From Entomortierella parvispora E1425 (Eukaryota > Fungi > Mortierellomycota): a stretch of 64,000 nt of DNA. Under the pieces are notes generated by a model that saw nothing but the letters and a program-made list of their open reading frames with translations, had not been told where the DNA came from and did not search any database. The stretch is taken from contig BQFW01000007.1 of the NCBI GenBank assembly GCA_020891255.1, positions 2,542,001 through 2,606,000 on the forward strand. Reading direction: 5' to 3'. Shown here piece by piece: positions 3,780 through 7,190 of the stretch (positions within the stretch are counted from its first letter, which is position 1; each line of letters begins with the position of its first letter). The position numbers were made by a program, and so were the translations under genes.

Positions 3780-6756
3780 TTAATCGATCTTGATCTCGCT
3801 GTGTTTACTTTCTTCCTCTTCGTCCAAGGCTTCTTCACTTTGTGGTGAAAACAAGCACCGCAACGCGGGCAAGAATTTGGGCAGTTGAGGGATCTGACTC
3901 AACTTTACGCTCATCAAATCGAAACAGATTCCAATGGTGGTCGACTTGTCATCACCATCAAAATTAGGAATGGAGGGGTACCGCTGACTGAAATGGGTCA
4001 AGAGCGTAAATTTGGCGTCCATTCCCTCGCCCACCATAATCGCCTCCTTTGTTGTCGAATGTTTCTTCTGCAGAGCCTTTTCCAGCATTTCTTCTTCAAA
4101 TGTGGCTTCATGAAGAAGAACCGTTGCACCCTGTCCAGCTTCCACCAAGTTGTTGCAAGGTCTCGTGTCGCCTGAATAGACAACCTTCCAACCATCCTTG
4201 TGCATCATGCTGATACCATAAGCCCAAGGACAGTGGATCACGTCCACAGTGACAATCTCTTCAAATCCAGAAGTCTCAAGCAATCCGTTCAATGCCTTTT
4301 GACCATGCTGGCGGATTGTGTTGTTGTTTTTGTCACGCCAATAAACGATATCCTCCGATTCAATATATTGGACATGTTGGTAGCCAAAGTCCTGCACATC
4401 TGACAGCTCCTGAAGGAACGTATTGAACTTTCGAGGAGCAATCATATAGAGAGGGTCGGTTTCTGGGGTGCGGAGCTAATACATTTGTTACTGGCGTTAA
4501 TTTTTGCATTTTCATAGTGCCACCCACCACAGGCCAAGCCAATACTAGATTTCATTTCGTACCTTGTTCCAGCGGTCAATGACCGTGACAATACCGAGGT
4601 GGTGGTCCGCATGCAAATGTGAAATGAAAATGCCCTTCAAGTTTTTGATGTGTTGATCCGCAGGGCTTAATTGATTCGTTGACTGACGGTACCCTCCAAA
4701 TTGTCGAAAGATTTGTCCATAAGTGCCTTCGCCTGCATCCAGCAAAAAAGTTCCATTGGTGATTGTGTCCACGAGTGTCGCGCTCACTATTACGTTCAAC
4801 AAAGGAAAACATTAATTCAAAGCCTGACGATGGTAGCAGATGCCACAGCGTTCCTGTTGAAAGCCAAATGTTACCATTTCGATATTTTCCAGGAATAGAA
4901 GATCCTGTTCCCAGTGTCGAGATAACAACATCCTTTCCTGGAAACTCTTCTGGCTTAGAAAATTCGGCCTTGATCTCCTCTGTAGCCTGCTCTGCCAGTT
5001 TGTAGTACTCTCTCAAGTATTCCTTGTCTCCATCCCGCATCCACGTATAATCATCTTCGAATGAGATAGGTTTAGTCACTTCATTTGTCAGAAGCTCGGT
5101 CGAGGGCTCAAACTGAAACTTCAACTGTCCTTCTGCTCGCTGAACCTTGATAGGCACTTCCATCCCGCTCAAAACGTCCTTGGCTAGGTCATGCTCGGGT
5201 GTGTTGTCGAAGTATGGAATCGGGAAGATAGACTTGTCCAGCTTCGACAACTTGAAGTTCGATAGAGATTGACCCTTCCAGACCAACGGCTGAGCACAAT
5301 AATCCTGGTTGGCAACGATGTGTTGAGTTTCGGAGCCAAATCGTTGCATCCACGCCCTGTACTGGGGATGGCTCAAGACGGTATGGTTTCCAAAATGGAC
5401 AATGCAGGCCGCGCTCAGCTTCGAGTCTGCGTTGGCCACCGATCCGTTCTGTGGGTGATCGTAAAATTTCTCAAATTGCTTCGACTCCACCAATCCTGAG
5501 ATGTAGTCAACAGTTGGACAGTCGACAACCATGAAGACACGTCCGGGGCGCGCACCACTGACCACCTGGTGAGGAAAGACCTGCTCACCCGAATCCGAAA
5601 GAACAGTCTCACCCTTCATAAGCTGACTATATCTCTTTCCAGCTGGGATGCCCAGCTTTAAGGCAGCGTCTTTGTTGAACTTTCCGACATAGTCTGGTGA
5701 TTGACAAATATAGCTCAGCGCCACCAAATCAGGACTCGTCCTGGGGAGGTTCATGAACCGTGCATTTGGAGGTCGAGGTCCACCACAGTTATGGCCAGTC
5801 TCTGCTTGCGCTTGACGTTCAATCATGTCCACGTCTGTCAGACCTCTGTCCGCCTCGGTAGTAGCACCATCTACACTCTTGCTCGAGGTAGCTCCAGTCA
5901 CTCGGTTACTGGCACGCTTGACCTTCTTGGACAATACAAGGGGCTCTCTGTCGAAGCGACGCATGTTAAACATGCTCGACAACATGGACCTTCTCTGCGC
6001 TTGACCATCCAATTCTGGCTCAACCGCAGGCGAATCAGGCGCAGATAGCAAGACGTCCGAATTTCGTTTAGATCCTGCGGCAGAACCGTCCGCGATAACT
6101 CCAGATCCTGATTCCTGGGGCAAGACTGCCGCAACCTCAGACTCGGTATTAGCCGATCCATTTTGAGATTCCATTGATTGCGACTTGGTCGACTTGGCGA
6201 TAGTGGGCCACTCGTAGCGTTCTGGACGTTCATAGTTCACGGGATAAACCGGCACAGGTGTGATACGCAGGACCTCATCCTTGAACGTCGTAGACTCCTG
6301 GTTAAACTCAATCGTCTCCAACTCCATGTTGTCCCTGTATACGAACGGTCTGGTAGAGACCAGTGCGTGCGTCAAGTTCTCGGCCCCCATAACCTTAATG
6401 TTCCTGATACCCGCATCGGACAAGGTCAACAACATTCCTAGAACAAATATCGCGTTAGTACATTGTTCTGAGACACCTGCCTGACTTTTTCCATCAGGGG
6501 GGAGGAAGGAGCTGTAAGTTTGGACCTGTCGATAAAGATGAAAATAAAACTCACCTGGAAGGCCACCCATGACATCCCAGTGGGTACGTGTCAAGAGCAC
6601 GGTCTTGAGTTTCGAGAACCGCATTTTGGATTCGATGCACAGTCGCTGGGTTCCCTCACCGCAGTTGATCAGGTAACGTTGCGAGTCAAAGTGGATCACG
6701 ACCGAAGGTGGGCAATCAGCGGTGCCGGCACTCAGGATTTGAATATAGCCCTTCAT
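3780..6756 (-). CDS. TRZ1: Long-form tRNase Z (tRNA 3' endonuclease, ELAC2/Trz1), multi-exon; first ATG at 6756, possible non-AUG extension to ~7050
   Basis: N-terminal YLINCGEGTQR and pseudo-motif THWDVMGG; C-terminal half LGTGSSIPGKYRN, LLDAGEGTYGQ, catalytic ISHLHADHHLG, YSGDTRPC, HEATF, HST and LLTHFSQRYP. Confidence 0.96.
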
Positions 6757-7190
6757 ACTGGATCGATTCGAGGTGGAGAAGAGTCTTGGGGCAGAATAGA
6801 CAAGGGGGAGTTTCCAAAGGGGAAGGGGGGCGGTCAGCAATGGCCGTGCGACGGTTGGAGTGGATAGAAAAGAGGGGTATGTCCGAGGAAGGGCTCTTGC
6901 TGTCTGAACGGCGCGCGTAATGTAGGAACGGCGTGTGGAATGGAGAGAGGAAACGGGAAAGGGGACGAGTGGTCGTAGTGACCAATGGGCGACTCTCAGG
7001 AACTGAATATTGAGAATCTTCGGGATGGAACAAGAACAGGGAGAGAGCAGGGTTCAATGCGAATGCAATGCAGTAATGATGGTCAGAGGAGGCGAAGCCA
7101 GCCTTGCATGTGCAATGGTTGTTGTTTGAAAAAAAATGTGTGACTGTCATTATCGGCAGGACTTTTGTATGCTCTATTCGCCATTTGCAA

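Follow-up and report, generated by a model that had tools for sequence, protein, structure and literature searches.

A conserved AUG-less, presequence-like extension upstream of tRNase Z in Entomortierella parvispora and other Mortierellaceae, with AUU as the putative start codon

The tRNase Z gene of Entomortierella parvispora is preceded by an in-frame open stretch that lacks an ATG and that all the Mortierellaceae gene models compared leave out. The extension encoded by this stretch is conserved in a frame-specific manner throughout the family Mortierellaceae, and it is present in the unspliced 5' leader of the mature mRNA of a relative. It is very likely that the extension is translated without the use of an AUG. 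The full model, in which translation of the extension starts at an AUU codon and the extension serves as a mitochondrial presequence, appears probable from sequence comparison. A first-pass annotation of the same DNA had proposed a mitochondrial isoform with a non-AUG start that annotation would miss. The conservation of the frame and the start of all gene models at the downstream AUG bear out this proposal, and its statements on initiation and import stand as predictions.

The tRNase Z gene of E. parvispora

The gene lies on the reverse strand of the window (the whole stretch of 64,000 nucleotides that was analysed) at positions 3780-6756, as determined by tblastn of the annotated ribonuclease Z protein, Pfam matches, and homologues. 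Exon 1 (6756-6555) is followed by an in-frame intron of 117 nt (6554-6438) and by exon 2 (6437-4876), and further exons follow down to the stop codon at 3782-3780. The product spliced from the ATG at 6756 is the annotated E. parvispora ribonuclease Z of 894 aa, identical apart from the introns. The annotated AUG occupies 6756-6754, and all annotated orthologues begin at this position with M-K-A/G-Y-I/L-Q. In Mortierellaceae, every annotated model starts at this same Met (M-K-A-Y-L/I-Q) and carries no presequence. A purine is present at -3 of the annotated AUG in all taxa compared in a codon alignment. Intron 1 is free of stop codons and forms part of a read-through ORF of 754 aa (4576-6840, reverse strand). 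In other words, retention of this intron would add 39 residues to tRNase Z and would not truncate it.

By its two domains, its length (~800-900 residues), and its orthology, the gene is a long-form tRNase Z (tRNase ZL, the ELAC2/Trz1 orthologue). The pseudo-metallo-beta-lactamase domain PF13691 (Lactamase_B_4) matches residues 6-65 over the full profile length (E=4e-19). The C-terminal metallo-beta-lactamase families PF12706, PF23023, and PF00753 are also found on the annotated protein, and the H-x-H-x-D-H zinc motif is seen as H-L-H-A-D-H-H. The last exon taken alone scores 22.9 bits, which is below the Pfam cut-off of 27 bits. The 46 homologues listed, with E-values down to 0, come mostly from Mortierellaceae and are named ribonuclease Z or ELAC2. 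Among them there is one long-form tRNase Z for E. parvispora and no second paralogue. A query with the C-terminal domain for a short form or a paralogue in E. parvispora returned fragments of long-form enzymes from other organisms as its best 120 matches.

An invariant AUU codon upstream of the annotated start

Upstream of the annotated AUG, the reading frame stays open for 99 codons (6757-7053, reverse strand) and is bounded by an in-frame TGA at 7054-7056. This stretch contains no ATG, no Asp or Glu, 10 Arg, and 2 Lys. It had been described in these terms in the first-pass annotation, and both the coordinates and the composition were reproduced. The near-cognate codons listed there (CTG 7050, ATT 7017, ATT 7008, CTG 6999, and TTG 6840) are all in frame. 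The upstream gene on the same strand does end where it had been placed, with a TAG at 7193-7191 that closes an ORF matching the C-terminal part of the Pfam Transferase family (PF02458). The space between this stop codon and the ATT at 7008 leaves 182 nt for the 3' end of the upstream gene together with the promoter and transcription start site (TSS) of tRNase Z.

The region was compared across nine genomes and one Linnemannia mRNA, which makes ten sequences. The genomes were that of E. parvispora and those of eight relatives whose genomic DNA was fetched: Entomortierella chlamydospora, Gryganskiella cystojenkinii, Mortierella alpina, Linnemannia zychae, Podila verticillata, Lobosporangium transversale, Actinomortierella wolfii, and Modicella reniformis. 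The codon alignment revealed two conserved peptide blocks. Block 1 reads N-I-Q-F-L-R-V-A-H-W-S-L-R-P in E. parvispora (6970-7011, reverse strand), has the family consensus N-I-Q-S-L-R-x-A-H-W-S-L-R-P, and lies some 59-128 codons before the Met; it would form the N-terminus of the proposed presequence. Block 2 reads R-L-F-S-T-S-N-R-S-S (6757-6786, reverse strand), has the family consensus R-L-F-S-T-S-N-R-S-[SDN], and directly precedes the Met.

Which codon would start the extension? An ATT at 7006-7008 on the reverse strand, 84 codons before the AUG, is invariant. The sequence A-N-N-ATT-C, with A at -3 (7011 in E. parvispora) and C at +4, occurs in 9/9 genomes as well as in the Linnemannia mRNA, and this ATT is the very point at which conservation sets in. 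ATT is the minor Ile codon in exon 2 of the E. parvispora gene (ATC 12, ATT 7). The ATT at 7008 is the only near-cognate codon kept in all taxa, and for this reason the candidate starts were narrowed to it. It is from conservation that we infer AUU to be the start codon. The same mechanism could operate from another near-cognate codon, or from several, and CTG 7050 (with A at -3) and ATT 7017 are both in frame and in fair context. Among near-cognate starts, CUG is in general stronger than AUU. However, neither of these two codons is conserved, and both the peptide conservation and the restriction of indels to multiples of three begin at ATT 7008. A start elsewhere thus appears unlikely.

Block 1 also contains a mini-hairpin (GGUC-N5-GACC, 6971-6983, reverse strand) for which RNAalifold gives 4 pairs, an energy of -4.5 kcal/mol, and no covariation. 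The hairpin starts 26 nt after the A of AUU, falls on the W-S-L-R-P codons, and is kept in the ten sequences, although M. alpina has lost one of the pairs. Because of this overlap with the codons and the lack of covariation, a structural role of the hairpin is inseparable from the conservation of the peptide. The optimal distance of an enhancing hairpin downstream of a start codon is roughly 14 nt. A role as an enhancer of AUU use was not adopted for a 4-bp stem that shows no covariation and lies beyond ~14 nt from the AUU. A conserved 3' splice acceptor immediately ahead of block 1, at the CAG of I-Q, was considered and rejected, as no AG is present there in E. chlamydospora and Podila.

The extension resembles a mitochondrial presequence

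The extension predicted from the ATT (6757-7008, reverse strand) comprises 84 residues in E. parvispora, of which 11 are Arg or Lys, none is Asp or Glu, and 24% are Ser or Thr, and its net charge is +11. Across the ten sequences, an extension contains 0-2 Asp/Glu, has a net charge of +5 to +14, and consists of 24-42% Ser/Thr. The predicted presequence would be 59-128 residues in length, which is long for a presequence. The maximum hydrophobic moment over 11 residues is 0.47-0.73, values that are uncalibrated.

Block 2 contains a candidate processing site for MPP (R-2/R-3, Icp55-type). The motif R/K-x-F-S-[ST] is found in 7/9 genomes and in the Linnemannia mRNA. The variants are R-F-S-T in Podila, with the Arg at -2, and Q-L-F-S-S in Lobosporangium, in which the Arg is replaced by Gln. 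We take the conserved R-x-F/S-T motif to resemble an MPP R-2/R-3 site with Icp55-type trimming. The composition of the extension fits that of a presequence because it combines positive charge and a near-absence of acidic residues with this motif.

The extension could be translated from a non-AUG codon and have a function other than that of a presequence. For example, it could direct another localisation, act as a regulatory peptide, or be the by-product of leader translation that tunes the main AUG. The conservation of block 1 is unusually high for a presequence and the length is atypical, as such a function would allow. The charge, the Ser/Thr content, and the conserved R-x-F/S site are, by contrast, those of a presequence. 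Furthermore, the enzyme is needed in mitochondria, and its yeast and human orthologues arrive there via N-terminal extensions. A function unrelated to mitochondrial import is therefore quite unlikely.

Only one frame of the leader is conserved

In the E. parvispora sequence alone, the openness of the frame is not beyond chance, and a scan over many genes would yield such cases. The strand that carries the leader consists of 42% C and 27% T. When the 252-nt segment from ATT to ATG was shuffled with its dinucleotides preserved, 22% of the shuffles stayed free of stop codons. A neighbouring frame, one base off, is open for 214 codons, through the whole 434-nt intergenic region (6757-7190, reverse strand) and beyond. 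The absence of Asp and Glu is rarer than openness in the shuffles (P about 0.01). The C/T-rich composition alone accounts for much of the openness and for part of the lack of acidic residues. Owing to the C/T-rich strand, the open shuffles, and the rival frame, openness in the single sequence was dropped as evidence, and the significance of the open frame rests only on cross-species comparison. The 214-codon ORF is an example of the long spurious ORFs that C/T-rich Mortierellaceae leaders give rise to.

These features would also suit an untranslated 5' UTR or promoter, in which the open frame is a matter of composition and the two blocks act at the level of DNA or RNA, for instance as a CCAAT box or a start-codon context. 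The comparison of frames argues against this. The frame of the Met is open upstream for 99-173 codons in the nine genomes (99 in E. parvispora and 102-173 in the relatives), and the other two frames in the relatives are open for only 3-91 codons. From ATT to ATG, frame 0 of the ten sequences totals 896 codons and contains 0 stops, 7 Asp/Glu, and 93 Arg. Over the same interval, frame +1 contains 17 stops, 45 Asp/Glu, and 56 Arg, and frame +2 contains 12 stops, 29 Asp/Glu, and 42 Arg. In other words, frame 0 is the only one that is open in 10/10 sequences. The ATT-to-ATG distances (252, 234, 258, 282, 285, 267, 177, 384, 219, and 330 nt) are ten different lengths that are all multiples of 3. The per-species probability of an open frame in shuffles is 0.03-0.36, with a product of about 1e-7 under the assumption that the species are independent. 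Stops or frameshifts in close relatives, which the first-pass annotation had named as observations that would count against it, are absent from the nine genomes and the mRNA, and it is the other frames that are broken.

The interval is also poor in ATG codons. No in-frame ATG is present between the conserved ATT and the AUG in the nine genomes, and in 8/10 sequences no ATG is present in this interval in any frame. The two exceptions are Lobosporangium and Actinomortierella, whose leaders each contain a single ATG that is out of frame. In Modicella, a single in-frame ATG lies ~140 codons upstream, beyond the conserved part.

Further evidence of translation comes from the pattern of change within the two blocks. 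Mean pairwise diversity at codon positions 1/2/3 is 0.29/0.22/0.43 in block 1 and 0.24/0.24/0.53 in block 2, compared to 0.13/0.06/0.50 in the first codons of the mature protein, and the flanks show no periodicity. Over both blocks, the third-position excess is 0.47 vs 0.25 (p=4e-4). The changes are mostly synonymous or at third positions, as among the Arg codons AGA/CGA/CGG/CGC, the Ser codons TCC/TCG/TCA/TCT, and the Leu codons CTG/CTC/TTG/TTA. Such wobble, together with the low count of Asp/Glu in frame 0 (7 vs 29 and 45), is difficult to reconcile with an untranslated leader. The whole-extension pairwise dN/dS (Nei-Gojobori) does not separate the frames, with 0.62 for frame 0 vs 0.63 and 0.57 for the shifted frames, as an untranslated leader would have it, and this measure was set aside as evidence. 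The middle of the extension is accordingly regarded as constrained only in frame and composition, which is usual for presequences and is no proof of one. Of the check that had been suggested earlier, namely frame conservation with a bias to synonymous change, the frame conservation holds and the bias is found in the blocks, but it does not extend to the dN/dS of the whole extension.

Could block 1 be a CCAAT box? The pentamer ATTGG, within the A-H-W codons, is present in block 1 in 6/10 sequences. However, four taxa (Podila, Lobosporangium, Actinomortierella, and Modicella) have lost the pentamer and yet retain the peptide block. Moreover, block 1 is part of the mature mRNA in Linnemannia, downstream of the transcript start, which does not agree with a promoter element. 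The CCAAT-box reading was rejected on these grounds, and it is very unlikely that the leader as a whole is untranslated.

Transcripts of the leader in Linnemannia

More direct evidence comes from transcripts of a relative. The tRNase Z of a Linnemannia sp. is represented by five Logan contigs (runs SRR6256850-55). These contigs are mature mRNA, since their CDS of 2613 nt runs without a break and has none of the three GT..AG introns found in the L. zychae gene. Measured from the AUG, the contig leaders are 384, 356, 338, 267, and 259 nt in length. With the conserved ATT at -330, three contigs extend beyond it, by 54, 26, and 8 nt, and their ends lie within a span of 46 nt. The 384-nt leader is colinear with the genomic DNA of L. 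zychae and contains no ATG in any frame. Indels between this mRNA and the L. zychae DNA measure 3, 33, and 9 nt downstream of the ATT, and the single indel upstream of it measures 2 nt. For Linnemannia, these findings speak against transcription that starts 3' of the ATT and against an ATG exon spliced on from upstream. A TSS downstream of ~6840 or a spliced ATG exon would have told against the isoform proposed earlier, and neither is indicated by the mRNA of this relative. It was also observed that the 5' ends of two of the five contigs, at -267 and -259, lie on the downstream side of the AUU. These may reflect assembly fall-off, or they may represent a second transcript that is able to make the AUG form only.

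It is extremely unlikely that the extension is coding but begins at an ordinary ATG in an unannotated exon spliced onto it. AG dinucleotides do follow pyrimidine tracts between the TGA at 7056 and the ATT (e.g., at 7019-7018), and the Linnemannia contigs could be 5'-incomplete. Against such an exon, the spliced Linnemannia mRNA matches the genomic order throughout the 384 nt above the AUG and has no ATG there, and the ends of three independent contigs cluster within 46 nt. The taxa share no AG on the upstream side of block 1. In E. parvispora, the interval between the in-frame TGA and the upstream gene's stop codon measures only 135 nt; it includes ATGs at 7184, 7150, and 7109 but lacks a good GT donor. 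In other genera, a divergent neighbour begins 190-375 nt from the ATT.

A model for two isoforms from one gene

How would one gene serve two compartments? In the model with an AUU start, transcription would begin a few tens of bases upstream of 7008. AUU is a weak initiator, and the AUU at 7008-7006, which has A at -3, would be used by only a minority of the scanning ribosomes. The product would be a tRNase Z with an 84-residue, Arg-rich, acid-free N-terminal mitochondrial presequence. Cleavage near the conserved R-L-F/S-T-S, immediately ahead of the annotated Met, would probably remove the presequence. The majority of ribosomes would pass the weak AUU by leaky scanning and would meet no AUG in any frame for 252 nt. 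They would then initiate at the AUG at 6756, which lies in a good context, and produce the nuclear/cytosolic enzyme, so that the isoform ratio would favour the shorter form. Through these two forms, a single gene would provide tRNA 3'-end processing in both compartments.

Comparison with known systems

The nearest known system is yeast Trz1. Monteuuis et al. 2019 (PMC6582344) showed that only a form of Trz1 with an N-terminal extension translated from a near-cognate codon enters yeast mitochondria, that this extension carries the targeting signal, and that yeast cells with only the AUG form of Trz1 are respiratory-deficient. Saccharomyces cerevisiae Trz1 resembles the E. parvispora protein in being the same enzyme with an AUG-less in-frame extension. 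The two differ in that the extension in the family of E. parvispora is 59-128 residues long, is conserved family-wide, and has two blocks and one invariant AUU, whereas the start in S. cerevisiae is, as described there, not pinned to a single conserved codon (PMC6582344). The arrangement described here is not a new mechanism; it extends the yeast Trz1 mechanism to a distant fungal phylum. What is new is the phylum in which it occurs, the fact that one AUU is invariant family-wide, the presence of two conserved peptide blocks, the long extension, and the control provided by paralogues.

Similar arrangements are known for other tRNA-related enzymes. The yeast genes ALA1 and GRS1 produce mitochondrial isoforms from ACG and UUG, respectively, as cited in PMC6582344 and PMC11974929. 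In these genes too, initiation at an upstream non-AUG codon equips a tRNA-related housekeeping enzyme with a presequence, and the cytosolic form results from leaky scanning. They differ in that the enzymes and the near-cognate codons are others. GRS1 and ALA1 were the precedents named in the first-pass annotation, which missed that the same mechanism had already been shown for yeast Trz1 itself (PMC6582344). Human ELAC2 is dually targeted by the use of two AUGs, and its longer form carries a mitochondrial presequence (Rossmanith 2011, PMC3084753). Like the proposed Mortierellaceae isoforms, the two ELAC2 isoforms arise by alternative initiation from one gene and one mRNA. In contrast, the upstream start of ELAC2 is an AUG in a weak context and not a near-cognate codon (PMC3084753).

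The extension has consequences for gene models. Predictions based on proteomes with AUG-started models would leave Mortierellaceae without a mitochondrial tRNA 3'-end processing enzyme. The family offers a clean comparative case of a putative near-cognate (AUU) start that is invariant in about ten genera, with a paralogue as the negative control and support from mRNA. It also suggests a simple rule by which hidden mitochondrial isoforms could be recognized in C/T-rich fungal leaders, which is to look for frame-specific openness together with lengths that are multiples of 3.

Paralogues and related lineages

A second tRNase ZL paralogue is present in Podila verticillata (MVEG_07097) and in Gryganskiella cystojenkinii, with 37-38% identity. 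In these paralogues, in-frame stops are located 1 (Podila) and 7 (Gryganskiella) codons upstream, upstream ATGs are present, and there is no extension. Because the paralogues are extension-less, the open acid-free frame is regarded as a trait of one orthologue lineage and not of Mortierellaceae 5' regions generally. The paralogues are not obvious mitochondrial substitutes. A separate mitochondrial paralogue had been put forward as a finding that would undermine the dual role of the extended gene; the extra copies in Podila and Gryganskiella lack the extension, and none is listed for E. parvispora. The duplication recalls Schizosaccharomyces pombe, which has two tRNase ZL genes, trz1 and trz2, one of them with a presequence (PMC2942849). 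The likeness ends there, as the extra copy in Podila and Gryganskiella is the extension-less one, the extension-bearing copy is retained, and there is no sign of a dedicated mitochondrial gene in the two genera. The E. parvispora genome may hold a second mitochondrial enzyme, e.g., a short-form tRNase Z, which, according to Zhao et al. 2010, seems to be present in the Zygomycota sequenced by then. Such an enzyme, if present, would not undo the evidence for translation of the extension.

Extensions before the same Met are also found outside the family. In the annotated tRNase Z of Rhizopus delemar, the same M-K-A-Y-I-Q is preceded by 28 presequence-like residues that begin at an ATG. In Ambispora leptoticha (Glomeromycotina), an in-frame stretch of 57 codons before the same Met is open and contains no ATG and no acidic residues. 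This stretch may be a further non-AUG presequence, and, as a single sequence, it hints that the device is older than Mortierellaceae. One possible, though doubtful, reading is that the AUU extension represents the ancestral means by which fungi direct their single tRNase ZL to mitochondria, that Glomeromycotina share it, that it is continuous with the extension of yeast Trz1, and that an AUG replaced the near-cognate codon later in lineages such as Rhizopus. If so, the AUU would be among the oldest conserved non-AUG starts known, and gene models of early-diverging fungi would systematically miss mitochondrial isoforms. The Ambispora stretch begins F-T-F-R-R-L-A-V-V-K-P and lies in an A/T-rich context in which the other frames are full of stops.

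In several database models, tRNase Z is fused to a neighbouring gene: with a syntaxin/SNARE in Lunasporangiospora, with a DnaJ in Modicella, and with a reticulon-type domain in Rhizopus. A syntaxin/SNARE gene adjoins the tRNase Z gene in three of the fetched loci of relatives, and the Lunasporangiospora record is for this reason probably a run-on annotation.
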